DNA of 64,000 bases, taken from contig NC_134030.1 in assembly GCF_964204645.1 (NCBI RefSeq), positions 4,010,778 through 4,074,777 of the forward strand. The letters are read 5' to 3'. Position 1 is the first letter of the stretch. Every line of letters begins with the position of its first letter. Source of the stretch: Tubulanus polymorphus (taxonomy: Eukaryota > Animalia > Nemertea). The notes below the pieces were generated by a model, which saw nothing but the letters and a program-made list of their open reading frames with translations, made no database searches and was not told where the DNA came from. Shown one piece after another: positions 9,561 to 41,689 of this stretch. The position numbers were made by a program, and so were the translations under genes.

Positions 9561-9639
9561 TGACCTTCTTGAATTGTCAAGTAGAACTGTGAGGTACAAG
9601 GAATTGTCAGTGACTTACAACACTGATAGCTGCCTTATT

Positions 9640-12310: not shown

Positions 12311-12329
12311 ATTTTAAATTTGAATTCTA

Positions 12330-14095
12330 AATTATTCAAAAGAGCTATCCATTGATAGCTTTGTGGTGGTTGTATCATTAAAATGGCGCTGGTGTTGGGT
12401 CTGTGTACATATTGTATCATATGTCGGTGAATTGGGATTGATTATTTTGTTTCCTGATCGTCCTTATTGCGACTTTACGTTTTAAATGTATGAATATTCA
12501 AAAGAGCTATCCATTGATAGCTTTGTGGTGGTTGCATCTTTGAAATGTCGTTGGTGTTGGTTCTGTGTACATATTGTATCATATGTCGCTGAATTATGAT
12601 TGATTATTTTGTTTCCTGATCGTCCTTATTGCGACTTTACGTTTTAAATGTATAAATATTCAAAGGAGCTATCCATTGATAGCTTTGTGGTGGTTGTATC
12701 TTTGAAATGTCGCTGGTGTTGGATCTCTATATATTGAATCATATGTCGCTGAATTATGATTGTTTCTGCTTCCCGATTGTCCTCATTAGGACTTAATGTT
12801 TAGAATTTGAAAATATTGAAAAGAGTTATCCATTGATAGCTTTGTGGTGGTTGTATCTTTCAAATGTCGCTGGTGTTGGTTCAGTGTATATATTGTAATA
12901 TATGTCGGTGAATTGGGATTGATTATTTTGTTTCCTGATCGTCCTATAACGACTTAATGTTTTAAATGTATAAATATTCAAAAGAGCTATCCATTGATAG
13001 CTTTGTGGTGGTTTGCATCTTTGAAATGTCGCTGGTGTTGGTTCTGTATATATTGAATCATATGTCGCTGAATTATGATTGATTCTGTTTCCTGATCGTC
13101 CTTATAACGACTTAAAGTTTTGAATGTATAAATATTCAAAGCAGCTATCCATCGATAGCTTTGTGGTGGTTGTATCATTGATATCTCGCTGGTGTTGGTT
13201 CTGTGTACATATTGTATCATATGTAGCTGAATTTTGATTGATTCTTTTTCCTGATCATCCTTATAACGACTTAAAGTTTTAAATGTATAAATACTCAAAT
13301 CAGCTATCCATCGATAGCTTTGTGGTGGTTGTATCATTGAAATGTCGCTGGTGTTGGTTCAATGTATATATTGTGATATATGTCGGTGAATTGGGATTGA
13401 TTATTTTGTTTCCTGATCGTCCTTATTGCGACTTTACGTTTTAAATGTATGAATATTCAAAAGAGCTATCCATTGATAGCTTTGTGGTGGTTGCATCTTT
13501 GAAATGTCGCTGGTGTTGGTTCTGTGTACATATTGTATCGTATGTCGCTGAATTATGATTGATTCTGTTTCCTGATCGTCCTTATAACGACTTAAAGTTT
13601 TAAATGTATAAATATTCAAAGGAGCTATCCATCGATAGCTTTGTGGTGGTTGTATCTTTGAAATGTCGCTGGTGTTGGTTCAGTGTATATATTGTAATAT
13701 ATGTCGATTAATTGGGATTGATTATTTTGTTTCCTGATCGTCCTTATTGCGACTTTACGTTTTAAATGTATAAATATTCAAGGTGCTATCCATTGATAGC
13801 TTTGTCGTGGTTGCATCTTTGAAATGTCGTTGGTGTTGGTTCTGTGTACATATTGTATCATATGTCGCTGAATTACGATTGATTCTGCTTCCCGAATGTC
13901 CTCATTACGACTAAACATTTAGATTGTAAAAATATTCAAAAGAGCTATCCATTGATAGCTTTGTGGTGGTTGAATCTTTGAAATATCGCTGGTGTTGGTT
14001 CTGTGTATATATGGTATCAGCAAATTATCATTACATACAGAGTTGCGTTTTAAGATTGTTATATTCAAAGATGCTATCGTTTGATAGCTTAACTT
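12330..14095. repeat. 162-bp satellite, ~11 copies (~9 copies at 45130-46575)
   Basis: AGAGCTATCC at 12341, 12503 etc.; AGCTATC-N4-GATAGCT palindrome in each monomer. Confidence 0.95.
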
Positions 14096-14420: not shown

Positions 14421-15149
14421 AAAAGTTCTTAATCAATATATAGGTGTAAAAGAATAATAGGTATGACAGAGTATAAAAGAATACGAGATATAAAAGAATG
14501 ATGTAAAATAATTATAATGTCCTTTGAACTTTACATGTCAACTAAACAGTATGGGAAATACTGCTGCCTGTTAATTACTACATTCTGTTTTAAGGGTGAT
14601 GATTAAAATTTGGATGAATCATTACTTTGTTCAGTAGATGCGTTAGATAGCCCTTGAAGCAGCTAAACTGGGTCAGAGTGTTTTATCAATGCTGATAAAC
14701 TCTAAACCTGAGTTAATAAAGCTTCAAAACATTGGAGCCAATTCTTTAAAAGTCTTGTCCATTATAGACTTAAAAGTGAAGATCGATCATCATAAACACC
14801 GGTGAAAACAATTGACGTCTCACTTAGTACCTGACGTCTCACTTTGCACTGGTGCATCCATGCACTAATGCACTTGCATGAAATGGCACTAAATACATAA
14901 AGACACACAAATTGTGTTTATGTATTTTTCAGGGTATACACATGCACACCCGCGGGTCCATGTAGCGTGCTATCTTTCTTTGTTCGTGTGTGGAAATAAT
15001 TTGTGAAAAGATTAAACACCCATTTTGTAGAGAAAAATGTGAAAGGTTAATGATTAATTGTAAAAGTGGTAGAAATTAAATGTGAAAATATCAATGTCTG
15101 AAATAATATAGTGAAGATTAAGTCGCAGTGATTATAGAGAGATTGTAGT

Positions 15150-17275
15150 GTCAGATCAACCAGATCAGTTGTACTGAGTTATCTCCCTCAAAGTCAGGAG
15201 CAACGTGACAAAGAGTCACAGTGAAAGTTAACAGTTCCAGAGGAACATCGAGTCATGAGTCTGAACTGACTTTAAATCAGGTATGATATTGAAATTGTAT
15301 AAATCAATTTTCAAAGTCTCAAAATTGAAAATTATTCATATTTTGTGTTTTCTTGTAGCAAATATTGAGAGGTCCAAAGAACTGAGTCACCAGAGATGAG
15401 ACAATCACCAGCCATCCGTTAGATGAATGTCGCCACTGAGATCAGTGGTACTGATTCATCTCCGTCAAAGTCAGCAAAAAAGTTACAGTCGCAAAGGAAA
15501 GTTAACAGTTCCAGAGGAACGTCGAGTCATTAGTCTGAACTGACTATAAATCAGGTATGATATTGAAATTATAGGGATCAATTTTCAATGTCTCAAAATT
15601 AAGAATTATTCATGTTTTGTGTTTTCTTGTAGCAAATATTGACGAATAAAGTGTCACCAGAGATGAGACAATCACCAGGCATCAGTTAGATGAATGTCAC
15701 CACTCAGATCAGTAGTAGTGAGTAATCTCCGTCAAAGTAGGGAACAAAGTTACTGAGTCACGAGGAAAGTTAACAGTTCCAACGGAACGTCGAGTCATTA
15801 GTCTGAACTGACTATAAATCAGGTATGTTAAGATACAGATAACATTGATTTCTTGTTTTAGGAAAAGTCCCAAACATTATGATGGTTTGTTACATGTTTT
15901 CTTATAGCAAATCGTTAGACACGCAATACCAGAGGAATGATCAGTCATTGAACAGACTATAAGTCAGTCATAAAAATGAAAATTACTCATATTTTTTGTT
16001 TTCTTGTAGCAAATGTGGAAAGGTTTACCGCAGAACTGATTGTCACCAGAGATGAGACAATCACCGGGCATCAGTTAGATGAATGTCACCACTGAGATCA
16101 GTAGTACTGAGTCAACTGCCTCAGTCAAGCTGCAAAGTAGAGTCACAAAGTTAACAGTTGCAAAGGAACGTCGAGTCATTAGTCTGAACTGACTATAAAT
16201 CAGGTATGATATTGAAAATTACATCAATTTTCAAGTCTTACATTATTCAAAATTATACATATTTTTTGTTTTCCTGTTGTAATAAGGAAATATCTAGAGA
16301 TGGTATGTTACTACAAGATGGAAAAATACCTTCAGGGATTCACATGAATATTATCCCTTAGTTGAAAGGATGAAAGAATGGATGAGTCATGAATCTGAAT
16401 TGACTATAAATCAGGTATATATTGTAATAGATAGATTAATTTTATTGATTTAGTGATTGTTGAAACTATCCTTTAAAGTTCGTTGTTTGATTGTCTTGTA
16501 GGTGAAAATATGTGAAACATCTAATTAAACACGATGTTGGCGTTGCTGGAACTTGGAGAACACTAATGTGTTGCTGGAACTTGGAACTGTAATGCGTCGC
16601 TGGAACTTGGAGAACTCTAGTGCGTTGCTGGAACTTGAAGAATTCTAATGCGTTGCTGGAACTTGGAGAACTCAAATGCGTTGCTGGAACTTGGAGAACA
16701 CTAATGCGTTGCTGGAACTTGGAGAACTCTAATGCGTTGCTGGAACTTGGAACTCTAATGCGTTGCTGGAACTTGGAGAACACTTATGTGTTGCTGGAAA
16801 TTGGAACTCCAATGCGTTGCTGGAACTTGGAGAACTCGAATGCGTTGCTGGAACTTGGAGAACTCTAATGCGTTGCTGGAACTTGGAGAACACTAATGTG
16901 TTGCTCGAACTTGGAGAACTCTAATGTGTTGCTCGAACTTAGAGAACTCTAATGCATGTTAAGACTTGGAGAATTATTGTCTGGGTGCAACTGACCCTGT
17001 ATGTGAACATGTGTGTTCAATTTGAATTTTATTTTAATTTAAATAAGACAAGTTAGAATATCTTTGATTGTTTCTAAAGAGTTTTTGATGTTGTTTTGAG
17101 GTGGAACTGAAATGCAGCAGTCAGTTCCGTAGTGTGTTTGAATATTGACATAACATGATGACTGACCTTGATTTATTTGTGTTGACTTCTGTCTGTGTTT
17201 GTTAATTACGACTGTTTTAATTCATTTGTTATTGCAAATACATATTTATTTCAATAAAATGGTATGAGGATCTGT
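15150..17275 (+). ncRNA. putative multi-exon non-coding or pseudogenic transcript made of ~270-bp exon-intron modules (copy B ~47680-49750)
   Basis: Repeated AATCAG|GTAT(G/A) donors (15281, 15555, 15823, 16204, 16415); (TT)CTT(G/A)TAG acceptors (15358, 15632, 15907, 16009, 16501); AATAAA at 17253; exons of 196/190/194 nt with stops in the frames I translated. Confidence 0.55.
16538..16975. repeat. 26-28-bp minisatellite GCGTTGCTGGAACTTGGAGAACTCTAAT (also 49103-49450)
   Basis: Direct inspection, ~15 copies. Confidence 0.95.
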
Positions 17276-18010
17276 AGAGGAGCCGAGTCAACTTGGTGTT
17301 GAATAAGTAAAACGAGGTGGTTAGTACTTTATAGTTGTGACTTGTGTATTTGAAGTACCGGCACGAGCTTTTAGATTTATTGATTTCATGGTGTTTAAAT
17401 GTTTAAATAAATTATATTGATTTAAAATGGTGTTTGATAATTGGTTGAAGTCTTTGTTTACTTATGTTTACTTATATGATACATGTACATATTGAACTAT
17501 TGATCACAACTACTGATCTATTCGTGGTTTAGTTGTTCGCTACAAATTGTTTTGTGGTTCTTTTTTCTGTAATCTACAGTAGACTGGGCTCTTAACTCAA
17601 ATCACATTAATCAAGTATAGTATCACATTGACTCAAGCTCTCCCTCTCTCTCTCCTCAACTGACTTGTTTGAATGGATTTTAGTTAGAACTCGGGCTACT
17701 CATGGACATGTAAACTAGTTAAAGTCCAGATTATATTTACACTTTTATAAAGTGTAATGAGAGATAACTTCAGTAAACTTTCACTTCAATTCGTGCCAAT
17801 CTTGGTCTCAGTTCGTCCCAGTAAGGGCGAGCCGGTTTACTGTAGTGTTTGTCACCTTACCCCAGACCTGCTGGATTACAATCTTATTTAAAGATGAATA
17901 TTATAGACAGCAGATTGATACACTTTTATTTTACAAACAGAAGATGTGTCAGAAATAAACTAATCTAATAGAGGTTCATAGTATACTGCGAGATGAGTTG
18001 ATCCCTATAC

Positions 18011-18240
18011 TGTACAGAGGTGTCCCGGGTTCGAATCCAGTAATAACTGTCGCTGATTCAGAGTGGGCCTGATGCTGAATAGAAGATGTACAGGGATGTC
18101 CTGGGTTCGAACCCAGTAATCGCCGACACTGATTCAGAATGGCCCTGATGCTGAATAGAAGATTTACAGGGATGTCCTGGGTTCAAACCCAGTAATCACC
18201 GACACTGATTCAGAATGGGCCTGATGCTGAATAGGGGATC
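18011..18240. repeat. 76-bp tandem repeat carrying a tRNA B-box palindrome, 3 copies (2 at 50470-50640)
   Basis: GGGTTCRAA at 18027, 18103, 18179; CTGGGTTCGAACCCAG is a perfect palindrome. Confidence 0.8.
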
Positions 18241-20785
18241 TATTGAATTGTTTTTGCTACCTCGCGCAAATCTTAGCGCGCAAAAACGAAATAATTTGTT
18301 TTTGCGCGGGAAAATTTGTTTTTTGTGGAGGATGAAAAACATATCCGTATGTCCCGATCAGCCACCAGAGTTGTTCTAGAAGAACATGGCTGATTATTCC
18401 AAGCGAATAACTTTCCTTTTCGACTATAATTAACAACCAACAATCATTACTCACCTAATATTGAATGTAAACATTGCATCAACCTTGGGATTTACGAACT
18501 TGTCGTCGAAGCGTTCGTTATCGCGCAGATAACTTAACAGTACAACATTATTCTGACGACATAAAACTGTCAAACTCGCGAATTACAGGACAGTGAAGAA
18601 TTATGACACGGGATTAATTGTATACAACATACGTCACAGGACGGAATAATACAGCGATATTGTACGTGTCCTTTTATTCATAATTCATCGTAAACTACTC
18701 GCATCCCTTCTCGTATTTAGAAACAAACATTGATTATTATCATATCGACCGGCTTATAAATTGCGACTCTTTCTCCTCTGAGATATTATTCCTGTCCCAG
18801 TGGCTTAATTTTACAAGACTGTACAACTGCCGATTGTCATCAATCGCCGTCTCGATCGGCACAGTTGTTTCCGGGTCAGCGAATGCTTAATATTTGGCAA
18901 AATCTGTCTCTGGACTCGATTGAAAACTCGAAAAGAAAATAATTATTAGTGAAAATTGTCACATCGACGCAAAATTTGAATTTATCGGTTCGGAAACATC
19001 GTAACGCGATAAAACGGTCGAAATTAAACTGACGCATTTAGATCTCGCTTCTACTAGTCTTAATAAACATATATCATTTAATGCCCCCCCGATGAAAAAA
19101 GCCGCTCTCCGGCCGAATAAAGCAATTTGCTACAGTGCGACGAGCTGCTCAATTTGGCGACAGGATTATCGACAACTCGTCTCAAATCATGGGAAGCAAT
19201 ATTTCCCTGAGGAGTATACGATCAACTAACAGCGTTCTCATTTCAGCATAGTGATCCGTTTAAAACGTATAATATCGTTAGCTACTTCTACGATACATAC
19301 GCTAATTATATACTTAATGCTTTCGATCATATTGAATTCCATCTGTCAAGACGAACAACGAAACAATTAAAACGGCTTTCATATTGTTGACGTGTTAGAA
19401 AAATAAAGAACCGAACGATATTTTGTGATGATCTGGTTTTCAGAAATCAAGAGAAGATATTTCGCAATTAACACAGTTTTCTAAAAACAGATATCATCCC
19501 TATAAACTACAAGTTTATTAGCGATGAGATTTCATATCAAAATCTGCAATAAAAAATCCAGGCCAAATATATATACCCGATACGGGTGGATAAGAGTAGA
19601 TACATTTCCCATGATATTGTACTTGGTGGGAAATGTAGGCTACGTCGAGAGCGTGTCCATTTTATAGGAACGGTCGTATCTGAATCTGTCCATATGTGGT
19701 ATTATAGCGAACATGACTGATTGCTGCTGAATTAAACTTTCGGGTTTAAATGTGACACTGGCCTATAAAACTCGCCCTGAATTATAGTAAATGAAATCCG
19801 TCTGTCAGAGACACATGTAATCATCAACCCGAGTACAACATTGTCTCTATTTGAATTGTATTTCCCGCAGAAATCAATTCCTAGATCCGATTATCAGATT
19901 GTTAATGAGCTATGAATATTATATTGGAAGGGTTGCGTTGCCATTTCACTCGCGTTTATAGTGTTATATCATCGTATGTCGGGATTGATTTCCGAACTGG
20001 GTTTGATGCGGCCTTCTTGTAAAGCACCTCTCACACGGTCCATAAATTGGGTGGAGGGAAGAAAATCACATTTTAAGTACATCCAAATTTTATTTCAACG
20101 TCAAATTCCATGGGTTACATATCATTCAATTAAAGAAACAACGCATAAATGATATAGACGACAGACTTGGCTCGTATTGTAACTTCATTGTTTCTTTTTG
20201 AATTCTATGATCAATCCCGATTGATAGGTTACCTCGAAAATCAGGTTTTTTACATTGAGTTCGGAGATGTTTAAGCATTCTCCGATAGCAGATGAGAACT
20301 CCATCGACTGTTCTAGATTACTCGCGTGCCACAGTATGAAAGTCGAACTACCGAGTTAGTTCACAAATTCACTTCTTGATTTGCATAGGGGCACCACCCG
20401 ACAATAGATAAAGACTACTCGCAGGAATCACAGAGGCCTGACACAAAAGGTATACTCGAGTGGGGGCCACCACTGGGTTTACTCACTCACAATACGGGGC
20501 TGTTGTTTTTTGTCCCTTCAAAGTAGAAATTATACCCTCCGAAACTTTATCATCTGGAGGGTTCTTAAACATTTCTGTCGGACCAAAATTCGTGTTTCAA
20601 CATGGGTCAGTTCACACCATCTATTTTCCTAAATTTTAGAGATCAACTAAATCATTTCACATAACAATTAATATCATGAATTAGGCCTACCCCTCATTAC
20701 AATCTGAAATATAAAAAAAGAAACACTCGAGGCGAGCTATCTAGTCCCGTTAAGAAAAAAAAATTGCCAGCCAAATGTATGGTTT

Positions 20786-21099: not shown

Positions 21100-21213
21100 T
21101 CTTGACGTGGCGGGAATATTAGTACTTTTCATTGGTCAGGATCAGTGACGTCACACTGTCAGTATAAATACTCAGGTCAGCTGATCCCTCCTTCCAGTTC
21201 GGCCATCTTTCAG
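21100..21213 (+). promoter_or_regulatory. RNA Pol II core promoter and 18-nt first exon of gene 1 (copy B 53485-53598)
   Basis: TGACGTGG 21103, GGCGGGAA (E2F-like) 21109, ATTGG (CCAAT) 21131, TGACGTCA (CRE) 21146, TATAAATA 21163, Inr-like CCAGTT with A at 21196 (33 nt after TATA start), GCCATCTT (YY1-like), donor CAG|GTAAGC at 21214. Confidence 0.8.
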
Positions 21214-21948
21214 GTAAGCAAGCGTCGTCCATTTTATTTATTTCTTTCGATCAAATCTATTTATTAATCTTACTTGTAAATTTCATACATAGACCTTAGG
21301 TTTCGCATACGGTTTTGTTTAAGACAATTTCAAAAGTTCCGAAAGTTCGGATTATATCATATACGTGTTTAATTATGACATTTCCATTGTGATGTTCTTT
21401 TTGCTCAAAATTGTCCAAATCGTATTTTTAATATTTAGAAGTAAATTACAACATTTGACTTTCATTTTCGTTCTCGTAAAAATGAAGACGTTATTGTGAT
21501 TTTATTGAGGAATTTTATTTAATTTATTTATGAAATTTTCGGAAGCAGTTATTCTGCTGTTCAAATCTACGCGCTAATGCGGCTAGTTGACATGCCTAGG
21601 TGTAATACACAGACCGCTCAGTCTATTCAACCATGACTCGAATCCATAGAAACCTTTTATTCGAAGCGTCGTTCAACTTAATTCTGGTGGCTTCTATATT
21701 TAATATTTAGAAAATAATGATGCCCAATAATTTAATGTTATTATTATCTAATGCAAACTCGAGTTAGCTATTTCTTAAAATCAATAATTTTCGATTTTCT
21801 TGATTTTTATAACATTATTGTTTTTACATTGCAGCAGCAGCAGCAGTGACAGCAGCAGTACAAGACAAACATTGATACCAGCAAATTTATTACAACTTCA
21901 ACTTAAACTTTAAACGAATTCAACTTCTACTTCAGCAGCAACACGACC

Positions 21949-24900
21949 ATGTCTTCAAAATATGACATTTTTTCCGGATTGTTAAAGGTAGTGCGCGCCG
22001 AGGTCCTGACACTCGACCCTGTATCCCTCGGCGCGTTTTGTGATTTGAGTAAGTACAAACTCTACTTCATCAAATTCTCGATTATTTTTAGTGACAAGCA
22101 TCTAAAATTATTTGATTTCCAACATCTGAAATTGTTTGATCTCAAATTCACAATTATTTTATCTCAAATCTCCGCATTATTGGATACTAAATTTCAAATT
22201 GTCTCAATCTTCTATCATCAAATGTCAATTTCTTTCAATCCACTTTTTAATTTCGGAAAACTCAATTTATGTCTCACACTGATTTCATTTCAATTTATTT
22301 TGAAAATATCATTTTATGTTTCTAGTCTTTTATTCTTTTTCAAATTACTCGACTTAAACTCAATTTAATTTGCTAATAATTCTAATGGTGAATAATTGAA
22401 TAATTTTAATTGAATTGAATTGAATAGTGAGTAGAGGTTCTGGTGGATGAGAATGAACTTGAGGACGTAACATCATTTCCTGGTTCCTGGTTTTCAAATA
22501 TCGTCGAAATTGTGAAATATTCATCATATTTTTCATATGCAATGCTGTATCCAGTCAATAGAGATAAGTTACAACATAAACAGTTTAAACTGGCTAGGCC
22601 TCCAGACCAATGCACTTCATGGAAAATCCTGATTTATATGTTTAATAAATCAAGTAACTGGACTGCGCGGTTCAGTCCATTTTAGTCAGTAAGTAAGCAG
22701 ACTGCAGTTTAGTCCATATTTTAATCAGTAACTGGACTGCGGTGTAGTCAATATTTTAGTCAATAACTGGACTGCGCTGTAGTCCATCGTTTAGTCAATA
22801 ACTGGACTGCGGTTTTGTCGATGGTTTAGTCAATAACTGGACTGCAGTTTAGACTGCTGTTCAGGAACCGGACAGCTGTTTAGTCCGTATCCAGATACCC
22901 GTCACATTATGGGACCAACTTTTTAGATACTGCTAAAATGTAGCACTAGTATTTACGGTACTTTCGTTTTTCTCTGCGACTCCAGCATCTAACAACATGT
23001 GATTTTCTTTTTATTAATCATTGATCAAACGTCAGGAAATTCAGGATCACTTTTTTAATTAATTGGTTAAACTTCGTTCTTCATATCTCTAGGTAGTTGC
23101 TCGCAACATTTTGAGATCCTGAGATTATGGCGGGAAGGAGGTATATCTCACGACTGCTATCATGAGCTTATCTGCGAACTAGTCTCAAGCCGCACCCACT
23201 CAATGTTTATTTTAGATCTAAACTAGGATATGATGTTTGATACGAATGTCTTTCACTAGCTCGGCTCATAGTCCGAATCTTCATCGTCTATTTGTTGGCG
23301 AATCCTAAATATTGCGGCCTTGCGGTAAATAGAGTTTAAACACGATTTATTTCTAACTGAGCAGATCATCCCGTCTGTGCCTACATTTGTTGCTATAATA
23401 ACGCCCAGCTGCCATAGAATTCTTCAATGGTGTATCTGTGAGTTTTTACAAACGCCCAAGATTCCTTGTTTCCTTGTGGACTGCGAGTGACATTAACTAC
23501 CAGCAGCCATGACACGTATTCATCAATGAATCGTCTGCAACATCACTGGTTCAGTTTCAATCATCCTTACGTGCCGTTCATTTCGTGAAGTTTTGGATCG
23601 ACTATTTCATCATTTTCGTTGTTCTTGTACGGAAGTAGATTGATTTGTGTCCTCAACAGTTGCAGACTGAAGTACTCAGTAATTTCTTGCACAAGTTGAA
23701 GTTTTCTGCATCGATCATGCAGCAGATGTCCGTTGGCAGGTGTCTGTTGGTAGGTGTCCATATGCAGATGTTTTTTTGCAGTTTCAGCGTGAAATCATTA
23801 GCCATCTCTTCATTTACTTATAGGAGGTTTACATGTTTGTTATCAGTCAGCATCCCACATTATTAACATCTCGGACCAGTTATCCAGTCCAAATCGATGA
23901 ATTTCACCAACAGCACCCCCTAGAAAGAATTTATGCAATATTTTCAGCTGTTTCGAGGTAATTCCAATCAGAAACATTTGTTAACGCTTTTATCTTTTCC
24001 ACTCTATTGTGTACAAATCATTTCAATCTTTGTCGACCAAATCCAACATTCATGTTTGAGTACATAGATCCATATGTGTCGGTAATTAGCTCGCTATATT
24101 CTACTCCTTAACATTGCTTGTTATTCTTTCCTCACCTTAAAATTTTCGTTTAATTTTTCGAATCTGCAGTTTTACATCCAGGGTAATATACATGAAGCGG
24201 CCGATTACAACTTCAGGACATGCGTCAGTGAAGATTACAATTTCGGCTTCTTGTTATGGGTCGACAACAAATCGTCTATCCAGTGTTTTCAGTAAGAAAT
24301 TAACAAGCCAGGTCCCTTTGAAAAATGGGAGGGTCACATCGTATGTGACAGTCCCTGAAAAAACAGTGGGGTCCTTAAAAAATGACAGACGGGTCTGAGA
24401 CCCGGGACCTGGCTCTTATTGAAAACACTGCTATCATCCATCGCTTTTTCGTTACTACGTTCGAAGGAATTTCTGATCTTTGTCCATTGGCCCGTTTTGA
24501 CTCTTCGTCCCCTTCAATGTTCACTGTCCATTGCTTAATCATAAGGGCTTTCATGGTGCAACGATCCTACTAAGTCCCAAAGGATCAAATATCGATGACC
24601 ATTTTGACAGAACGTTTCCTTTCGTTTCTTTGTACTCAATCGACGTATCTTTTTTACATGTATGAATCATGATATTACTTTCCATTTCATTTTGATTGGT
24701 TCAGCATCCTGTTGATCGATAAATCAAGTAGCACTGTTCTTGCGGTGGACCGGTGGTCAACAATTTCTGTTGATTCTTTTTCATAATCCTTATCGCTTGC
24801 GGATTCTAGACTAAAGTTTCTTCAATTCTCTCGAATATCGTTAAAATTTTCTTGTATGTTTTTTAAAATTCCTCCAGCAACGATTCGAGAACTGTAACTT

Positions 24901-25898
24901 GTTTTTCGTCGATATCTTCTCTGAGGAGTGCTCCATTTTTCTCAACATTTTTTCAGATGTTGATAATAAACATTGTTGTTGTTTCTTCAGTTCTGCCCGG
25001 ATGGCTTCACCTTCAGAGGGCTCACCCATCCATGAAAATAATACTAAAAAATACTACTGTTGGTTATGACCAGGAATGAAGTTTTGCAGAGAGATGACGA
25101 AGTGACGATGTGCAATCCATTGATTCTTTACTAAACTGAATTGCTGCTTTATTTCTATATTAAAAACTACAAAAGTATCAGCTTATCATCTCATGGACGG
25201 TGCGCGATCGGACGGTGTGAGCGGAAGTTGCGATTAGCACAGATGTTGCCGCGGGATCCGGATAAGTGCCAGTTACACGCTTATCTCTGTACTGAGGAGA
25301 ATCATTCACAAAATCGCTACTTTTGGTTTACAGTTCCAACTTCTCTTTTTGTCAGAACGTCAAAATTCACTTCTTTTTTTACTCTCTTTAGTATTCGTCT
25401 GATTGTAATTAGGTCGCACCAACATTGTGTAGGAAACTCAACATGTAATATGCCATAATTACTATTTATACAGATCAATCTATCCAATATTCTGAATTAT
25501 TCAGTAAAAATGAATAAAGCGAAAATCTGACAAGAATATTGCTACTTTTCAGCTGCACCAAAGCATACGGTCCCATACAGTGGTTTAGTCAGTATCCGGA
25601 CCACAGTTTAGTCAGTATCCGGACCACAGTTTAGTCAGTAACGAAACTGTGTGATTCATTTCGTTCTGAGAACAGATTTTATCAAATTTCCTCTAGCTGT
25701 TCTTCAGATAGGCCTACCCTTTGACTAAATGTTTTATTTTCAGAATTCTTTTATAAAAAGTATATCCTCCACCGTTATCCAGGCCTGACATTTATCAAGG
25801 TCTATCCTGTTTTACACCTTACAAGTTCGACAGCGACATTTGATATTGTTTTTTCTGTAAATGGCTGCAGCTGTATTCATAGTGAATTATTCCACTGA
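21949..25898 (+). CDS. gene 1: spliced 84-aa orphan microprotein, join(21949..22048,25744..25898)
   Basis: ACCATG start in exon 2 (acceptor TTACATTGCAG 21834); phase-1 donor A|GTAAGT 22049; acceptor TTTTATTTTCAG 25743 in frame; MSSKYDIFSGLLKVVRAEVLTLDPVSLGAFCDLKFFYKKYILHRYPGLTFIKVYPVLHLTSSTATFDIVFSVNGCSCIHSELFH*; 3'UTR intron 25918-26021; AATAAA 26498; paralog shows synonymous divergence. Confidence 0.7.
22650..22900. repeat. intronic ~35-bp AACTGGACTGCGGTTTAGTC minisatellite, continuing at 25583-25645
   Basis: GTTTAGTC-containing monomers on both sides of the 22903-25582 insertion. Confidence 0.75.
22903..25582. mobile_element. 2.68-kb decayed CAC-terminal (CMC/EnSpm-like) DNA transposon in intron 2 of gene 1 (copy B 55288-57968)
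   Basis: Left CACATTATGGGACC...GCTAAAATGTAGCA; right reverse complement CACTGTATGGGACC...GCTGAAAAGTAGCA; apparent 2-bp GT TSD; interrupts a minisatellite; broken minus-strand ORF pieces inside. Confidence 0.6.
24281..24430. mobile_element. 150-bp MITE, hAT-like ends, 5-bp TSD (copy B 56667-56816)
   Basis: TIR CAGTGTTTTCARTAAGA...AGCCAGGTCCC at both ends; CTATC duplicated at 24276-24280 and 24431-24435. Confidence 0.8.
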
Positions 25899-26569
25899 AT
25901 GATTCTATACTTGAATGGTAAGAAGTGACTTATTTGAAATACTTAATGAATTCATTTGAAAAAGGCCTAAATTCTAAATATCATTAATTGTTCGCGTTTT
26001 AACGATGTTTGATTTTTATAGATAAAAATCTTATTATAATTTGTAGTGAATGGATTTGATTGTATGAAGGTACAGCAGTGGACAGTGTCATGTGAAATGG
26101 TTTTTACCCCTGATGGTTGTTTCTGAAGGTACAGTAGCCGGCAGTGTCATGTGAAATGGTTTTTAACCCTGATGGTTGTTTCTGAGAATAACAGTTGAAG
26201 TTTTTCGTTTGATGATGAAAATACAGAAGAAATATGAATGAAATTTTTGGTGTCATTTTTCTGTTTGTCATGCAATGAAAATGAATTAGACTTACTTAGC
26301 AAAAACCATAGGGAAATGTACAGTACTCGAAGGAAATATCACAATTTTTGGAACTAAAATTCGGTGAAAATTCATTTTAGAAAAAAATATTTTCAAATGT
26401 ATCGCATTTTATAGGATTTTTTGCCCTTAATGATACTGTAGACTTCGCTTAAACTGGTAGACGGTCTATATCTGGTATAATCTGTTCAATTCGATGAAAT
26501 AAAGATGAAATGTTGTTCTAAATACATATGTTTTGCCTTTTATGGTATTGCTCTGTTCGATGATGATAA

Positions 26570-26830: not shown

Positions 26831-27861
26831 AGAACGCTTTCTGTATCCCATAAATGTTCACTTCATTTCCGTTTATTCCTAAACCGGTAAATTGTAATGG
26901 CTGTTTGCCTATATTATAGAATACATTTATGTACTATCAACCTTCTATCTCTGCTAGCAAAAATACATAAAAACATACATACATCTTTATGTATTTTTGC
27001 TGCTAGTGATTAGGCCTTATGTTCTATTAATGCACACGCATGACTTAAACTGGTCATAGTTTCAATTACTCAAAGAGGACATCACAAGTGAACTGAATCG
27101 GAGGAAAATGTTGCGGGATAAAGAAACATGAAATGTCCAGTATATTGAAGGACTTGTGTTCGTGTGTAATTAGAGAAAAACCCTCAGAGTGCCCATCATT
27201 GTTACTTAAAAGCAGGAAAATCAGTAGAAACTTTGGAGCTCAATAGAGTGAAAACTGTAAGAGATAAAGCTGGTAATTGAAAAGTTTGTAGGGTATGACC
27301 CTTGGATAATTTTGGTGATGATTATTCTTACTGAAAGTGAAGTCCTATGCAGATGAGCTAATTCGCATAAATCATAATCAGTGACCTATTTATTTGAAAA
27401 CCCCCTAAATTGCAGGTATCAAAATGAACAAATCGGGTATCTAGCCTCAGCTAACAGCTGACAATGGAATATTCTATGTCTACGGTCAGAAATATATATT
27501 TTATGGGTAATTATAATTAGTAAATGAGCTAATAATTAAATCATGTGACCTCTGGATAAGTACCCGCTACTTTCAAATGCAAAAAAACTCAAATATTTCG
27601 AATAGCAACACCATAAAAACGCAGCATAAAAACTTACTAATGGGTGCTGCCATTTAATCAAGCCATTTAGCGGCAGGTTTCTCCGCTGAATTCTTTGCGA
27701 CTAAACTGCTATAAGAAATGTCGACGAAAGTCGACAGGGCACTGAAAAAGTTTTAGAAGGAATTTGGGGATTCACTACATGGTCAGATTGTATAAAATAC
27801 AAAGAAATTGATTATTTTTGACTGCTATTAGGCTCAATAAAACTTTTGATCAAATTACCTA

Positions 27862-29560
27862 ATGAGATCAAAAACGCCGAGATATCGCACGTGCCCCCTC
27901 ATCCGAGAAACAACCGTTTGCCGCAGCCACAACAAAATGTACGCGATCCGCAGCACAATTAATTGCGCGACCCGTGAAATCATATACTGCATCGAATGCA
28001 CCAGGTGCAACCTGCTGTACGTCGGCCTAATGCAGCTATCAATGTGAACCCTGACCCCCCCTAGTTCAGACATTCGACTCCAATTCGACACATACCATAA
28101 ATCTTTCCGCTCAGGTTTCGACAGATTATCACTATTACCATAGATGACATTAGTCAGGTTTTCGTCACTTTTATAGAATAACCTCGTCAGGGCTTCGACA
28201 GCTTTCCACTAGACAGATTTCCTTAAGAAATACAATATGCCAGGTATTCGACACAATGTAGCATGTTTATTAATTTCATTTCTTTTATTAAAACTATAAA
28301 ATCTTAACAAAACTTAACTCATTTTATAAGCCTTTTGAAACAGCAGTGACATGCTGCAGACATGATAGATGAAGCAACGTCATGTTTCTTCCAAGATCAA
28401 ACTTCATTGTAAAAGAAATACCAGTCAAGTGGCTGGTTTGGGCTTTAGGGGAACCATGTAATATTGTTTATCCAAAGTAAACATTCATTTTGACTAATAA
28501 GCTCCACATCCAAAAGATGTGTTTTATGAGGATTAAAATATGCATTAATTAATTATTACACAATTACGGTTCTTGCGTTTTTTTTTGTATAACCCTGTTT
28601 ATAATATGAATCTCAATGTTTAAAAAGAGCTGTTCACCAATATTTTGAAGAAAGTGTCAAAGTACATTATCAGCAGTCACCGCTAGATATTAGAATTGAA
28701 ATACGAGATTATAATCAACAGTGGTACATCAGATTCTGTAAAAATTGAATGAACACAGGCCAACTCTATTATACACTGAGATTTACTTTAATAATGTAGG
28801 CAAATTGTCATACTTAAGCACCTGATGAACCCCAGGGTTTTGGCAAAAGTATGCAAAAATACTGTATAAATTGACAAATTGAAAAGTTTGATATTAGAAC
28901 AAATTCATTATATTATAATATCATTACTATACATGTATTTTTGTATAAATAATGCTAAGCTAACAATTAAATGTGACAACTTCTGTGAGAATTTCCCACG
29001 ATATAGAGGCTCTGGCGACCTGACGTTTTAGTGAAGCGACATATCCGATCGGGAGCGTAACAACGGAAGGTAAACTGACTATATGTCCCGTATGTTCAAA
29101 CCGCATATCAAACCGCTTTTCGTCAGACTTTCGAAGTAGGTTTAGATTGGAATCCGCCAGACATTCGATGCTCAATGAATACATAATTGTCACGCATTCG
29201 ATAGAGATACGACACCCATTTCTTTTGGGTTCGCCAGAGATTCGTTAATTACTAAAAAAGTCTTCGTTCAGGATCCACCAATTTTCACGTCGAAATCCTG
29301 GCGATGGATGAAATAGGGGGGGTAAGGGTTCACATTGATAGCTGCATAACCGGAATGTCTTTACAAGAACGCGTCACACATCACGTCTCGCGCATCAGAA
29401 CGTATAATTCGACTCCAGTCGCGGACCACTTCAACCAGGTCGACCACACCTACCAACACTTTCGGGTGTATGGTCTCCAACACCTACCAGGCTCGACGAG
29501 ACCGATCCGCGAAGCAGCCAAACGAGACTGGATATTGGTCTTGATTCGTTTCAATATCAA
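27862..29560 (+). pseudogene. Penelope-like retroelement GIY-YIG endonuclease fragment, split by a DNA transposon
   Basis: PRYRTCPLI...INCATREIIYCIECTRCNLLYVGL|TGMSLQERVTHH...PVADHFNQVDH...GLQHL...REAAKRDWI matches the PLE endonuclease pattern (IYxIxCxxC..YVG, RxxxH, VAxHF..H, WI); no reverse transcriptase present. Confidence 0.88.
28031..29346. mobile_element. 1316-bp non-autonomous TIR transposon with TAA TSD (PIF/Harbinger-like), copy A only
   Basis: ~38-bp TIR TGCAGCTATCAATGTGAACCCT.ACCCCCCCTA; TAA at 28028-28030 and 29347-29349; empty site CCTAACTGG at ~60081 in copy B; subterminal TTCGAC repeats. Confidence 0.92.
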
Positions 29561-29587
29561 ATCGACACTAATTTTAGATACCAGTAA

Positions 29588-29915
29588 CTAGCATAGTACC
29601 CGTCCACGGATGGATTGTCATAAATGTATTGGATATAGTTATAAAATGTACGCTGAAAGATTCCATTATCTGCCTCATTTATGATCTACTATACCGTTGT
29701 CTAACAATACGGTTATTACAGATAATGAGAGTGATAAAATTGTATTTACAACAGCGTTAGAGGGTGGCAACCATCTCTAGTAACCAGCGACATGACAAAT
29801 ATGGTTGTTTCCGAACGTTCAACTGGCCCTTCGTTCATTCTTCCATCACATCACCTTCCGTTACCTATCAATGAATATCGCCTGCTGCATTATTTTATAG
29901 GTTACTTTTTACAGA
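29588..29915 (-). mobile_element. short non-autonomous Helitron (copy B 60323-60645)
   Basis: Minus strand begins A|TC(T..AACCTATAAAAT) and ends with a CCATCC-GT-GGACGG hairpin 8 nt before CTAG|T; A^T insertion without TSD. Confidence 0.6.
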
Positions 29916-29973: not shown

Positions 29974-30722
29974 ATTTGGATGTTATAACAGCAATACAGA
30001 GAAACAAGTCTGAAGCAGCCCGCGAAGCTCGTAACATCTTTGGAGCTTTCGTTAACAGGTGCGTTGACTCCCTTCGCGAGCCTGAGGAGCAAGCTCCTCC
30101 ATTAGTTATTGTGCCACCTTTTAAGCTTGCTCTTCCGCAGGAGGCGGACCCTGCTCCTGTACATCTGGAGCAGGAGGACGCCCCTGCCGTGGGGACCCCG
30201 ACAGAGGCCCCACCGCTTCAGACGCCCGCACTGCGTCGGTCGCCCCGTAGAAATATAAATCCAGATATCAATTATGCAATAGGTTCGGGGCGTCCCAAAA
30301 CAAAAAAGGGCAAACGTGCGGCTCGTCCTCCTCCACCGAGACAACCAAATTTTGAGGAGGAGAGCAGTGATGAGGAGGAATTCGCCACTCCTGGAGCGAC
30401 ATCACCACCAGGGCCCGCAACACCACCACCACCACCACCATCAACTGGACCAGCATCAACGATACCACGAATAAGACGAAACAAAAGAAGAATAGAAGAA
30501 GAAAATGAAAATAATGAAACACCTAATATTACACCCGCCCAGGCGTCAACATCGGGCGCTCCAGTGGGGGCACCACCCTCCCCCGCTGTTGAGCTTATCG
30601 CGCGCGGCCCTGGTTGGTCTAAAAACATTGATTACCACGATCCCATCAAAATGCTCCGCGATGTTGAAGGGGCCTTTAAAGGAAAATTTCAAATGGTTAA
30701 ACGTCGGCGAACATCAAAGTAA
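29974..30722 (+). CDS. 248-codon coding exon, Pro/Glu/Arg-rich low-complexity protein of unknown family; 5' exon unidentified
   Basis: Strong acceptor TTTTTTTCATTCCAG at 29973 (the track's start codon is TTG); GC-rich open frame kept in both copies with an in-frame 3-nt indel; AATAAA at ~30916. Confidence 0.6.
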
Positions 30723-32981
30723 ATCAGCCCCTTCACTCGCCATCACCCGGGCAACAACATCAGCCCACGCACGTCTGCAGATCGGCACTTCTTGAAACTC
30801 AGTTTTCCCTTCCTCCTTCGTCGATCTGCAGGTCACGCAGTGTTAAATATCTGTCAACACTCCTTGAACCAGTGGGCGTGCAGTCCTTCCTTACTTTTAT
30901 TTTGAAAAATATAAAAATAAAAAACCAGACCTTTATTTAATCATTGTTTTTATGGAGTTTTTACGGTTTCTCCAAAAAAATTTAAAATGATACAAATATT
31001 AAAAAATTCATGATCATTTCATCAATTTATTTATTTTTTGGATTAAAAGAAATTTTTTTCCATCATCTCCCATTCTCATTCATATACATTTTAAATCATT
31101 TATTTATTTATTTTTTTGACTGTACGTCCCACTGTGTTCCATACCATTTTTGCAACACCTTATTCATTAAGGTCCATTTTGCTTCTCACGATACTGAAGC
31201 ATTTACCATTTTTGCATTTCCTCTTGCAAAACCTTATTAACTATGGTTCATTTTGCTTCTCACAATGCTGAAGCATTTACCATCCTCGCATTACCGCTTA
31301 CAACACCTTATTAACTAAGGTTCATTGTGCTTCTCATGATGCTGAAGCATTTACCATCCTTGCATTACCTCTTACAACACCTTATTAACTAAGGTTCATT
31401 GTGCTTCTCATGATGCTGAAGCATTTACCATCCTTGCATTACCTCTTACAACACCTTATTAACTAAGGTTCATTGTGCTTCTCATGATGCTGAAGCATTT
31501 ACCATTTTTGCATGGTCTTTCTTATGAGTCATCTATTCTAACGCTATGGTCGGCCGTTGCAAAATCTCTTTCGGGATAAGCAGGGAATCAATTCCTATAA
31601 TAACTCCTATGGAGTTTGAAAAAGGTGGATTTTTCAAATCAAAAGGAACAGCATTCACATGTGATTCCTTATTGAACTAGGAACGTGGAGAAGGAATAGC
31701 TATGTTTCACACACATAATGCGTTCCTTTATGTAGCTGAAAATAACGTGGAGAAGGAACAGCTATGTTTCACATAATGCGATTCCTTAGGAAACTACATT
31801 GAAACAGATTGTTCAATGTTCCATGTTGCCCCCTCCCCCCAAATACTATGACGTTTATACGTCAAGTGTAAAACCATTACATCGTTATTAACATACTTGT
31901 TTTTCTAATTACAGAATTAAAGATTAATTTAATATGACATGAAAACTTGAATGATTGAAATGTTAATATCTAATGCTCAACAACGGAGGAAAATCCTTCA
32001 CATGTGAGCGGAAGGATTGAAAATGTTTACTCAGGAAGGAAAAGGAATATATATTTATATACGTGAGATTGCCTGGATTAAAAATTGCACAAGAAAGCAA
32101 ACCACAGCAAAGACTACGGTAATCAATTTCATCACATTTCTAAGGTGCGAAAGTTCACTGGGTCAGTGATCAATCCATGAATTTACGAGTTCTTAATTGA
32201 ACATGCAAAAATCTGCAAAAATGCAATGATAAAGAATCTTGGATAAAAAAAGAATAAAATAAAGATCTTGGATTAGAGAATTAGTCGTAATCACTTCAGT
32301 GATCAGGTTTTATTGATAGATATTGATCTCTACTTATCCTAACGATCACCAGGATGAAGATTTGATTTTAAGACTCTTGTTAGATAATCTGCATCTCTTG
32401 TTGAAATCAATAAGGCATATGAGAGAGGAGGTCTGAGATATGAGAGAGGAGGTTCAGGGATATGAGAGTTAATGGAGATATGATAGAGGAGTTTATGGAG
32501 ATATGAATGATAGAGGATTTTATGGAGATATGATAGAGGAGTTTATAGACATATGATAGAGGAGATGGTCTAAAAGGAAAATTGTTAAGTCCATAACAAT
32601 CGAGCAACTCAGTAATAGACGCCACTCTGATATAAGTAACTCCTGGTCCTCGATTGGGGTCTAGATTGCAGGAATTGCATTTAGCAATTTAAATATGGTT
32701 GATAGAGCGTGGAATTGTTTCCGTGTAGTCATGCAATGCACAAAACACACATCAGATTAAGGCTGTTGAGAGGGAATTATCAATAGATGAAGTTGGTTTC
32801 AAGAGGTTGATCATTCATATGGCAGTTAATCAGATCAGGTTCTCAGGTGCTTCCTTGGTCCCCAAAAACTGCATAAGTTGTATCAAAGTATGTGATATAA
32901 CCTACTAATTGATTACGTAAAAAGAGGCTACTTGTAGTTTCTCAGCCACTTTGCAATTATTGTTGTAAAGAGGTCACAAAA

Positions 32982-33411
32982 TCAGACCAGCACCACCAAT
33001 AGATTTCTACTGAACAGTAAGTGTTGTAATTTTTGTGGTTCCAGTTTTTTTTTCACTTTCCGAGATAGAACAAAATTCCTAGATTTTGGGTCCTTCAGTG
33101 CTGAAATTCTATTTTATCACAAATTTTAAGTTTCCTAATCTTAACTTTGCAAAAATTTGAACAAAAATTTAAAAAAAAATTCTTAAAAAATGAGAAATTA
33201 AAAAAAGTATAGGCCCTAATAGACATATTTTATGATAACTTTCTTAATTAAGGAGTCATCAAACGAGATAATATGAGGTATTTGAGATTGTCATGAGTTT
33301 GAACTTACTTAATTCACAAAGCACGCCGAGGGAGGTGCGATCTAAGGTCAGGACCTCGGCGCGCACAGCCTCCATAAAGCTACGAAAAAGATCTGCTTTA
33401 TTAGTTGACAT
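32982..33411 (-). CDS. gene 2: paralog of gene 1, join(33411..33309,33100..32982), 73 aa here (probably premature stop; promoter/exon 1 absent)
   Basis: MSTNKADLFRSFMEAVRAEVLTLDRTSLGVLCEL + phase-1 GTAAGT donor at 33308, in frame with the acceptor at 33101: TLKDPKSRNFVLSRKVKKKLEPQKLQHLLFSRNLLVVLV*; CAG-rich 5'UTR and intron-1 motif ATTCAACCATGACTCGAATCCATAGAAA shared with gene 1. Confidence 0.65.
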
Positions 33412-36400
33412 CGTTGATATTTTCTTTCCGTTTTTTTTTTACTGCTGACTTTTGACTGCTGACTACTGACTGTTGACTGATGACTCTGACTGCTGACTGC
33501 TGACTGCTGCTGAAATGTAAAAAAGAAATTCTATGAAAATCAAGAATTAAATCGAAAATGGTCAGTTTTAAGGAATACTCATCAAACTGAGTTTATATCC
33601 TAAACAATTGATACCCAGCAAAAAAAAATTGAAATAAAAATCATTTAATGAATGAACATTAAAATTGTCGCTATTATTTAAACATTATTCCAAGAAGCCA
33701 CCGGAGTTAATCTCAATTTCAAAGCCAGTTGGCTGCGTTTCCCGAATGAATGCGTTTCCCGAATGAATATTTTCTATGGATTCGAGTCATGGTTGAATCC
33801 TAATGATCACCGGGATAAAGATTCTGAGTTTAAGATTCTTGTTAGATTAATCTGCATCTCTTGTTGAAATCAATAAGGCATATGAGAGAGGAGGTCTGAG
33901 ATATGAGAGAGGCAGTTAGGGAGTTATGAGAGCGGAGGTTCAGGAGAGTGGAGGTTCAGGAGAGAGGAGGTTCAGGGAATATGAGAGTTTATGGAGATAT
34001 AATAGAGGAGTTTATGGAAGTATGATAGACGAATTTATGGAGATATGATAGGGGAGTTTATGGAGATATCATAGAGGAGTTTAAGGAGATATCATAGAGG
34101 AGATTGTCTAAAAGGAAAATTGTTAATTTCATAACAATCGAGCAACTCAGTAATAGACACCGCTCTGATAAAGTAACTTCTGGTCCTCAATTGCGGTCTG
34201 AATTGCAAGAATTGCGTTTAGCAATTTAAATATGGTTGATAGAGCGTGGAATGTAGGCGTGCAATGCACAAAACACACATCAGATTAAGGCTGTTGAGAG
34301 GGAATTATCAGTAGATTTAAGTAATCGACGATGAATTTGGTTTCAAGAGGTTGATCATTCATATGGCAGTTAATCAGATCAGGTTCTCAGATGCTTCCTT
34401 GGTCCCCAAAAACTGCATAAGTTGTATCAAAGTATGTGATATAACCTACTAATTTATTACATGAAAAGAGGCTACTTGTAGTTTCTCAGCCACTTCGCAA
34501 TTATTGTTGTAAAGAGGTCCCAAAATCCGACCAGCACCACCAATAGATTTCTACAGAACAGTTAGTGTTGTAATTTTTGTGGTTCCAGTTTTTTTTCACT
34601 GTCCGAGATAATAAAAAATTCCTAAATTTTGAGTCCTTCAGTGCTGAAATTCCATTTTATCACAAATTTAAAGTTTCCTAATCTTAACTTTGCTAAAATT
34701 TGAACTTTTCCTATTCTATTTCTTGTCAAAGATTTCATTCCAGTTCTCAAAATTATTTGCAGTTTTTTAATGTCTGCGAAATATCGTCAGTTATTTTCCT
34801 GGATTCATATTTATTATTGCCCAAAATCATATCATATGAATTATCATTACTATTATTGGATTTTTTTTTCGCTGATTGATTATAGATCTTTTGGGGTTTG
34901 GTTTCATATTATGATTGATCAAGGTGATCCATCTAAAACTGTTTCATAAATTTTGAAATATTCATATTTGAAAACAATTTCGTTGATACTTCTAAACTAG
35001 TAATTCTACAAAAATTCTAAAAACAATTTTACACGTATCTTACGACTATTCTAGAAATGATTTCAAATTATATCAATTTTAATGTAACTATTTTATCTGA
35101 ATTTTTAATCTATTAAAGTAACTATTTTATATCTGAATTTTAAAATACCTATGATATCTAAAAACTATTTTATCTGAATTTTAATCTATTAATCTAAGGT
35201 AACTATTTAATATCTGAATTTTGAAATACCTTTGATATCGAAAAACTATTTTATCTGAATATTATACTATTTAATTTGTGTGTATTTTATCTCAAAATAT
35301 CTTTAAACTATTTTATTTGTATGTATATAAAAAAATATCTCATTTGTATATATTTTAAAACTATTTAATTTGTACATATTTTAGAACACTTTTAGAACAA
35401 TGTTTTTTTGTATTATAATACTAGCTAAAAGTTCAATTTGATGAAATATTTTATATATGACTATCACTGTGTATATTCGAACCTCAGTGATTTCATGAAT
35501 GGAATAACTGAAGGTCCAGGTTTTATCACTGAATACTCTTTGACACAATAACGTGGTCCACAACACAGATATAAATAGTGGTTATATAAAAGGCCCATGT
35601 TGTATATAATGCACGCATAAAGAGCTTTTACTCATAGTTGATATAGGCTCAGTAAACATGAAATGTGTTCGAGAACTTTTTCTCGTACTTTTCTTACCTT
35701 TTTTCTTGAGAATTTTTTTTTCAATTTTCTATTTTACAACGGAAAATCTACTCATTTTTCGTAGGTGGTTCACTATGATGGAATGCGATAAATAATAAGA
35801 AACAGTCCAAGTGTATTTTTGATAGGATATTTTCAGCTTCCCGACGTATGAAATTGACATAGGTTATTCAAGCCTAGGTTCAGAAAATCACTACTAGGTG
35901 GCATGTCAGATTATTACCGTAGTTCAATTACATCAAATGAATATGATAACATAACCAATTGTAGTACGAACAGTAACAACAAACTTAATTTTCCTGCACA
36001 AGATACAGAGAGTAGTAAAAGTCAAATACTATTTCTGAATTAGAATTTCCTCTAGCCTAAATGCTAGTGGTCATGTTATCATTTTTATCCAACGTCATCT
36101 CGGCTTTTTCAAAACTCGTCTTTGAACGTAATGATAATCTATAGTATTTTTGGAAATGATATAAATCAATGCAAATTTGATGTCATCATAACAAAATATG
36201 TCGCTGAAAACATCATATGAAAAATACACTCCGATTGTTTTTTTAAAATTTATTTCGTTCCATACAAAACCATACTCAGCTCCACAGTTTGATTCGGATA
36301 CAAGACTTACAAGAATTTAGATACATAAAATTACATAACTGTTGAACTGGGTTTTGTTAAGTTGTGAGCATGACATTTATAATTAATCACTAGTGTGTTT

Positions 36401-39400: not shown

Positions 39401-41689
39401 TCTTCTCTCTCCCTCCTCACTCTCCTTTATCTCTCTTTCTTTTCTCTCTCTCCCTCTCTCTCTTGTAAATATTGTAAATTTGTAAATAGTAGTATTTATT
39501 TCTCTTTTTGTATCTTTCTTGTAAATATTGTAAATTTGTAAATAGTGGTTTTTATTTCTCCTTTTTTAACTTTCTTGTAAATATTGTACATTTGTAAATA
39601 GTAGTTTTTATTTCTCTCTCTCTTTTTTTAACTTTCTTGTAAAAGTTGTAAATTTGTAAATAGTAGTTTTTATTTCTCTTTCTTTTCTAAACTGTCTCTT
39701 TTAAACAATACGTTTTATCAATAGATTTTATCAGCGATTTTTATCTGTTTTGTCCTGTGGTATGACGTTAAACTGCCTCTTTTAAACATACGTTTTATCA
39801 ATACATTTTATCAGTAATTTTTAAATACATTCGTAGCATTGATACCATTGCAATACATTAGTCCCTCCTCCTTTTGATTAAGTACACCCAATCATTTACT
39901 AACAAGTGATGGTTAAATACACTTGCAAACTAGCAGATCAGAGATCTCAGGACGCAACATCACTTCAATCCTTATTTCTTGACATATACCTGGTAATATA
40001 AAATGCTCTTTTTAGCTTGTGACAAAATGTCTTTGATATAAGACGCTACTATTTGCTTAACTAGAATCTTCTTTCAAATATTATAATATCACTGGTTTGC
40101 AATATACTTAACCCTAATTGGTCGCAGCTGTTACAATCATCTCAACAACGATTGAGCATACTTTCCCCTTATTAGTTTGAAGTATAATTCCCCCTCCCTG
40201 GTTGCAGTTCACTTTATTGGTTGCAGCTATGAACAATCATCTCAATGATTGAGCATACTTTCCCCTTATTAGTTTGAAGTATAATTCCCCCTCACTGGTT
40301 GCAGTTCACTTTATTGGTTGCAGCTATGAACAATCATCTCAATGATTGAGCATACTTTCTCCTCGCCGGTTTGCAGTATAATTCCCCTCACTGGTTGCAG
40401 TTCACTTCATTTGTTGCAGCTATGAACAATCATCTCAATGATTGAGCATACTTTCTCCTCATTAGTTTGAGGTATAATTCCCCCTCACTGGTTGCAGTTC
40501 ACTTAATTGGTTGCAGCTATGAACAATCATCTCAATGATTGAGCATACTTTCTCCTCATTAGTTTGAGGTATAATTCCCCCTCCCTGGTTGCAGTTCACT
40601 TTATTGGTTGCAGCTATGAACAATCATCTCAATGATTGAGCATACTTTCTCCTCATTAGTTTGAGGTATAATTCCCCCTCACTGGTTGCAGTTCACTTTA
40701 TTGGTTGCAGCTATGAACAATCATATCAATGATTGCGTATTACTTTCTCCTCACTGGTTTGCAGTATAATTCCCCCTCACAGGTTGCAGTTCACCTCATT
40801 TGTTGCAGCTATGAACAATCATCTCAATGATTGAGCATACTTTCTCCTCATTAGTTTGAGGTATAAGTCCCCCTCACTGGTTGCAGTTCACTTTATTGGT
40901 TGCAGCTATGAACAATCATCCCAGCATAGTTTCCCCTCGCTGGTTCATTGGTTGCAGTTTTCAGCTTTGGTTTGATGATGATGAATGCTGGTTTTGTAAA
41001 CAGCTCTACGCGGTTTCGATTAGAATACAGCACCTAATATTAAAAGTCTAGAAAAGACTTATTTACATTTGTAAAAACGCTGTGAAAGGTGTATCGCTAG
41101 TTTCTCACATGACTCCTCTCTCTCTGACAAATAAGTAAGACACAAATCTTTTGTTGACTGCTGAATCAATTGATAGTAGTGAAAGTTTAGTGTTCAGATA
41201 CAATGAAAGTGTGAAGTCGAGTTTTAAACGTTATGTTAGGTAGGTGTACATGCCTCCTCTCTCTCTCTCGCCTCTCCTCTCTCTCATAAACAATTAAATA
41301 AGACACTCAATTGTTTGTATACATTTAGTTTTTTGCTGTGGTTTTCTCAATAGAAAAGTTTGAACTGCTCATTGATTGCAGCTCATTTCAAACTATGATA
41401 AAAGTGAGGTAAAAGTGGGTGAATTACTGCTAAATCAATTGGTAGTGATGAAAGTTAAGTGTTAAAAACACTGTGAGTGAATTAATTACTGCTTAATAAA
41501 TTAGTAGTGATGAAAGTTAAGTGTTAAAAACACTCTGGGTGAATTACTGCTAAATCCATTGGTGGTGATGGAAATTAAGTGTTACAAAACACTGTGGCTA
41601 AATTACTGCTAAATCAACCTGACCTTCTTGAATTGTCAAGTAGAACTGTGAGGTTCAAGGAATTGGCAGTGACTTACAACACTGATAGC

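Follow-up and report, generated by a model that had tools for sequence, protein, structure and literature searches.

What does an unannotated gene that begins near position 21,100 of a 64,000-nucleotide stretch of the nemertean Tubulanus polymorphus (contig NC_134030.1, positions 4,010,778 to 4,074,777, called the window hereafter) encode? A sequence-only reading had answered with a four-exon gene for an 84-residue microprotein, whose family would share a fixed N-terminal coding exon, the head, and vary in the exon behind it. The analysis described here corrects this gene model to an orphan multi-copy gene for a protein of about 282 residues. We assign a probability of about 0.7 to a lineage-restricted multi-copy gene, composed of a promoter with CCAAT box, cyclic-AMP response element (CRE) and TATA box, exons 1 and 2, and a distant last exon, with a surrounding block spread by recombination.

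The front part of the gene is as the earlier reading had described it. The TATA box and initiator (Inr), the 18-nt exon 1, the CAG-rich untranslated leader, the ATG and the AATAAA are all in place, and every one of them is found again in the second array unit of the window (Table 1). The promoter, apparently for RNA polymerase II (Pol II), is the best-kept stretch measured, with a mean identity of 94.5% to 17 other copies, and these copies retain the CCAAT box and the CRE, which had been overlooked. The GT donor of exon 1 is present in every copy compared, the 132-nt leader contains no ATG, and an identical phase-1 donor closes all head-exon copies read. The ratio of non-synonymous to synonymous divergence among copies (pN/pS) is 0.31 for the head exon, with a codon-bootstrap confidence interval (CI) of 0.18–0.47, which indicates that the head is coding and under purifying selection. 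An unannotated Pol II gene with a selected coding head, belonging to an amplified orphan family, is supported.

The main last coding exon, overlooked at first, lies much farther downstream and holds an open frame of 248 codons (29976–30719), behind a phase-1 acceptor retained in all copies read. Head and last exon joined give 282 residues, and 283 in the second unit. For the last exon pN/pS is 0.55 (0.45–0.66) overall and 0.40 (0.20–0.70) for the C-terminal 52 codons; the linker varies in length, and the C-terminal frame is preserved in the 13 intact copies aligned. Across the genome of 268 Mb there are 45 clear copies of the head exon and about ten decayed ones. A last exon follows on the same strand, 3–16 kb 3′ of its head, in 35 of the 45, with 250 or more open codons in 32; the other ten are fragments or members of rearranged clusters. 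In the proposed gene, the promoter would drive exon 1, exon 2 with its 33 codons and, past an intron of 3–16 kb, a last exon of about 250–300 codons. Judged from these sequences, at least 32 apparently intact orphan genes are under selection within a large duplicated block, and the main product in the window is most likely the 282-residue protein.

Table 1. Features of the window; positions count from its first letter.
Feature	Position	Strand	Remarks
Array-only flank	18250–20250		tandem junction ~20251
Pol II promoter (putative)	21131–21195	+	CCAAT box (reverse) 21131–21135, CRE 21146–21153, TATA 21163–21170; from motifs and conservation
Exon 1, non-coding, 18 nt	21196–21213	+	start placed by Inr consensus (A at 21196); donor 21214
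Exon 2, CAG-rich leader and 33-codon head	21835–22048	+	ATG 21949; acceptor in tandem CAG run; phase-1 donor 22049
Exon 3 of the sequence-only reading	25744–25917	+	probable optional stop-carrying exon or intronic look-alike; 51-codon frame exclusive to this array
Exon 4 of the sequence-only reading	26022–26520	+	AATAAA 26498; acceptor lost in at least five copies
Intronic GIY-YIG (Penelope-like) remnant	27850–29588	+	split by 1.3-kb insertion 28030–29347; unsplit in second unit (59926–60276)
Main last coding exon	29974–30722	+	acceptor in phase 1, stop after 248 codons; predicted to form two helices, a Pro/acidic/basic disordered middle and a C-terminal helix (conserved) with a basic end
Repeat-built downstream part	30723–50640	+	AATAAA 30916, sense-biased Pumilio motifs, exon-like repeats near 47800–48750, AATAAA cluster 49521–50432, 76-bp repeats at end
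Inverted fragment of another subfamily, 635 bp	33163–33796	−	end of intron 1, exon 2, start of intron 2; holds the supposed paralog 33310–33411
Second tandem copy of the gene	53516–61455	+	exon 1 at 53581, head 54334–54433, last exon 60704–61455; 283 residues

Alternatively, the main product could be the 84-residue microprotein, read from 21835–22048, 25744–25917 and 26022 onward, with third exons that vary across the family. Part of this model stands: its splice sites are present, the arithmetic of a translation from phase-1 exons is correct, and the intron in the 3′ untranslated region (UTR), 20 nt after the stop, is found in the array with its donor at 25918 and its acceptor before 26022. 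Furthermore, 25744–25917 is the sole strong acceptor-donor pair with 50–250 nt spacing within the first 32 kb, and of 13 dispersed copies, all retain its donor and 12 its acceptor; because of these two properties, the segment may be a real optional exon. As the coding tail of the family, however, 25744–25898 fails. The 84-residue frame requires a 14-nt deletion and a lost stop, both exclusive to this array, and it is broken in all 26 dispersed copies: a stop interrupts it in 24, one of the other two is out of frame, and one is without the acceptor. The dispersed copies have 11–15 additional bases after the acceptor, and splicing of the head to this site would therefore yield a tail of 18–19 residues, whose stop lies over 100 nt short of the next donor. 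The segment has no codon-position pattern, third positions being no freer than first and second ones (0.87/0.96/0.95), a stop-filled frame equals it in pN/pS (0.57 vs 0.61), and it has diverged as much as the introns. In one copy (C1:31124590) both supposed exons 3 and 4 are deleted and a last frame of 297 codons is intact. Moreover, with the microprotein as the product, the selected 248-codon exon farther downstream would have no start. A microprotein as the main product is therefore highly improbable. The 25744 segment may at most be an optional exon that truncates the protein, and the 84-residue product is possible as a minor splice form specific to the array.

The earlier evidence for variable tails came from a supposed paralog on the opposite strand. 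Compared with the head of the window, it has 12.8 synonymous and 19.2 non-synonymous differences, and since the ratio of the corresponding rates (dN/dS) is 0.36, the synonymous excess noticed before holds. It was not, however, confirmed as a gene with a third exon of its own. The 635-bp inverted fragment that contains it begins within intron 1 and stops about 100–150 nt into intron 2; over this range it is a match to the subfamily whose members lie at C8:15.48 and C6:0.81 Mb. Neither promoter nor tail is found in the fragment, so the “unrelated third exon” is merely flanking DNA. Two copies of an 830-bp stretch flank the fragment.

How has the gene become so numerous? It heads a collinear block of 25–30 kb, copied to more than 30 places near chromosome ends, with copies spread over nine or more large contigs; each of the 33 loci tested is within the outer 17.5% of its contig. 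About 19 dispersed copies are collinear over 19–36 kb, starting at a sequence equivalent to ~20317 and running through the gene and minisatellites to a segment of the 14780 type 19–36 kb downstream. The copied unit would extend from just upstream of the promoter to a distal cluster of poly(A) signals, and non-allelic recombination among copies close to chromosome ends would spread and reshuffle it. The window itself spans two of the seven tandem units, each of about 31 kb, that make up an array at C6 3.87–4.09 Mb. Probably, a single copy with 2 kb of flanking DNA gave rise to the seven units by tandem amplification. The stretch 18240–20316, once considered as a small Helitron, was dropped as such and is array-specific flank. 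Gene-bearing macrosatellites such as D4Z4/DUX4 and RS447/USP17 likewise consist of a large unit in a head-to-tail array with one gene per unit. The seven head-to-tail units of ~31 kb resemble them in this respect; here, in contrast, most of the family is dispersed and the array is a local offshoot of it, and the gene has introns and no known domain.

Alternatively, the block may be a very large non-autonomous DNA transposon, either of Helentron-like type or bounded by terminal inverted repeats, with the gene as its passenger or regulator. The constant position of the gene near one end, the many internal minisatellites and the head-to-tail array agree with it, as do arrays of a 76-bp repeat that bound the block on either side and are inverted in five copies, and a palindromic piece of 130 bp, close to the left end only, whose inverted arms measure 13 bp. 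However, the orientation of the right-hand 76-bp array varies, and none of the scored hits placed the left-end sequence, inverted, at a right end. No transposase-like Pfam match occurs in the 59 frames of the unit except the intronic GIY-YIG remnant. Of 58 genome hits to the Helitron Rep (PF14214) none lies within a copy, nor does any tyrosine-recombinase hit; an autonomous partner elsewhere may exist. A transposon is an unlikely explanation, and recombination between copies is preferred. The genes for Helitron Rep and tyrosine recombinases are located mainly mid-contig on large contigs, and this family is distal only. The 130-bp piece (L038:633–765) has about 300 candidate copies in the genome, some distant from the gene. 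The 1.3-kb insertion that splits the GIY-YIG remnant has 39-bp inverted ends and is present in one unit only.

The 282-residue protein would have a small helical N-terminal domain split by the long intron, a disordered linker rich in proline, threonine and acidic residues with basic motifs, and a conserved C-terminal helix with a basic end. Helices are predicted for the N-terminal ~66 residues, spread over the head and the start of the last exon. The head modelled alone gives two predicted helices, and a low-confidence model of the last exon (predicted local distance difference test score, pLDDT, 51) gives two initial helices, then disorder, and short helices near the end. The middle is 20–24% proline with acidic and basic patches. 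From this composition, the protein is most likely a nuclear adaptor that would bind a partner via its N-terminal domain. Exon-by-exon searches of Pfam, PDB sequences, Atlas, two large protein collections, and contigs of viral and metagenomic origin yielded no homolog; such searches are blind to short or length-mismatched kin. Rfam gave no match. Three protein matches, to an NLR, a bacterial-type repeat protein and a VWA array, all long repeat proteins, were rejected because their scores are sums of weak repeats. The first 66 residues may resemble small helical domains of the death-fold or SAM/HhH kind, with helices spaced and hydrophobic residues placed much as in helices 1–4 of a death domain. 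No support for a death fold came, exon by exon, from Pfam, PDB sequences or a comparison with one CARD, and helices 5–6 would be absent here.

Downstream of the last exon, the block is built of repeats. Pumilio motifs after the stop number 23 in sense and 4 in antisense (2.5 and 1.6 expected), and in the dispersed copies 19 and 0; sense splice donors are scarce in this part (2 vs 9 expected). These biases, together with the distal AATAAA cluster, suggest that the block is probably a single long transcription unit with an optional Pumilio-rich 3′ tail. Several points weigh against the reading preferred here. The Pumilio motifs are confined to a few tandem repeats and hence are not independent. 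The conserved AATAAA at 30916, 194 nt past the stop, allows a short 3′ UTR, and because of it the long tail may never enter the mRNA. The pN/pS values are pooled pairwise ratios that ignore relatedness among copies. Finally, no homolog or family supports any function of the 282-residue protein.

The history of the copies is mosaic. Groupings of copies shift along the gene; for example, L038 and L037 differ by no more than 1% as far as the long intron, and L038 shows 0% difference from L036 in the last exon. Divergence (p) is 0.15 in the head, 0.20 in the first 45 codons of the last exon and 0.06–0.09 in the introns. Thus both of these coding regions have 2–3 times the divergence of the introns, even at four-fold sites away from CpG (0.40); CpG decay was rejected as the sole cause of the high synonymous divergence (dS) of the head. 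It follows from this excess that these exons are older than the sequence that surrounds them. The supposed pattern of a fixed head and a variable tail is reversed: divergence is greatest in the predicted N-terminal domain, and conservation marks the C-terminal end.

Coding exons older than the adjacent introns, with halves exchanged between chromosomes, form a pattern of families under conflict or recognition pressure. In such a selfish family, like the wtf genes, the full-length form and the head-only form would serve as poison and antidote, with specificity set by the diverged N-terminal domain. The wtf meiotic drivers of fission yeasts also are a dispersed orphan family beside a shared repeat, with non-allelic gene conversion and repeat-length change (10.1101/2022.06.24.497463). 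Here, the dispersed copies adjoin a shared repeat and their halves are shuffled non-allelically, the N-terminal excess persists at four-fold sites, six different orphan head exons are clustered at C2:30.39 Mb, and the 25744 segment is a candidate for a truncating optional exon. On the other hand, the unit is much larger than in wtf, and neither a promoter nor an alternative start for a second protein was seen. Positive selection was not detected: pN/pS is 0.31–0.63, below 1 everywhere, including the most variable part (0.63, CI 0.42–0.93). High recombination near chromosome ends could yield the same mosaics without conflict. A conflict family is therefore very unlikely. Equally doubtful is a more far-reaching reading, a self-spreading family in which one 30-kb transcription unit would give a full-length nuclear protein and a head-only competitor, with germline timing by the Pumilio-site tail and specificity renewed as copies at chromosome ends swap N-terminal halves with one another and with a cluster of spare heads. 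That cluster (L043:2800–8650, C2:30.386–30.392 Mb) is scrambled, with the six head exons and pieces of last exons, and is possibly a store of variants or a rearrangement scar.

The apparently lineage-restricted gene family preferred here is closest in organization to primate core duplicons, in which a transcribed, lineage-expanded gene block is central to interspersed duplications (PMC7419210). LCR16a with NPIP/morpheus has a gene-bearing block of about 20 kb at interspersed sites, a lineage-restricted family, and a variable, low-complexity, proline-rich coding stretch whose frame is kept open (PMC7419210). In the nemertean, too, a gene-bearing block is common to many interspersed duplications, and a proline-rich coding stretch of variable length stays in an open frame. 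Here, in contrast, the copies are only near the ends of at least nine large contigs, the 3′ part is long and repeat-built, and the positive selection often associated with core duplicons was not detected in the measured pN/pS range; the likeness does not rest on a sequence relation. The family is filed under neither core duplicons nor wtf genes. It offers a testable invertebrate counterpart to core-duplicon genes and, unless expression or function is shown, is an apparently lineage-restricted curiosity.

There are further repeats and partial copies. The 3′ part of the block (14455–17860 in the window) is found without a detectable head exon nearby at about ten sites (in G000: C6:4.32, C2:25.8, C2:29.69, C2:1.94, C5:4.26, C11:12.28 and 13.55, C1:2.9 and 28.57, and C4:2.76 Mb), for which protein-less relatives or a different 5′ gene are candidate readings. 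Decayed head exons without a start codon stand in tandem, spaced by 1.3–1.7 kb, at L044 and at C6:2.08–2.16 Mb. Repeats of an exon-intron unit on the plus strand, with exons of 190–196 nt, good splice sites and stops in three frames, occupy 15161–16443 and ~47690–48970; they probably represent non-coding exons close to the block's 3′ end. An imperfect 350-bp palindrome with arms ~75% complementary, located in the downstream part (37693–38046 and 5529–5887), is retained in dispersed copies. Satellites of 153 and 159 bp lie at 9564–14019 and 41623–46500, and the 153-bp one has long plus-strand frames, an apparent by-product of repetition. The 76-bp repeat (18011–18242) contains a tRNA B-box-like word and marks block ends, and it also forms larger arrays no more than 250 kb from contig ends (e.g., at C2:31.66 and 31.85 Mb).

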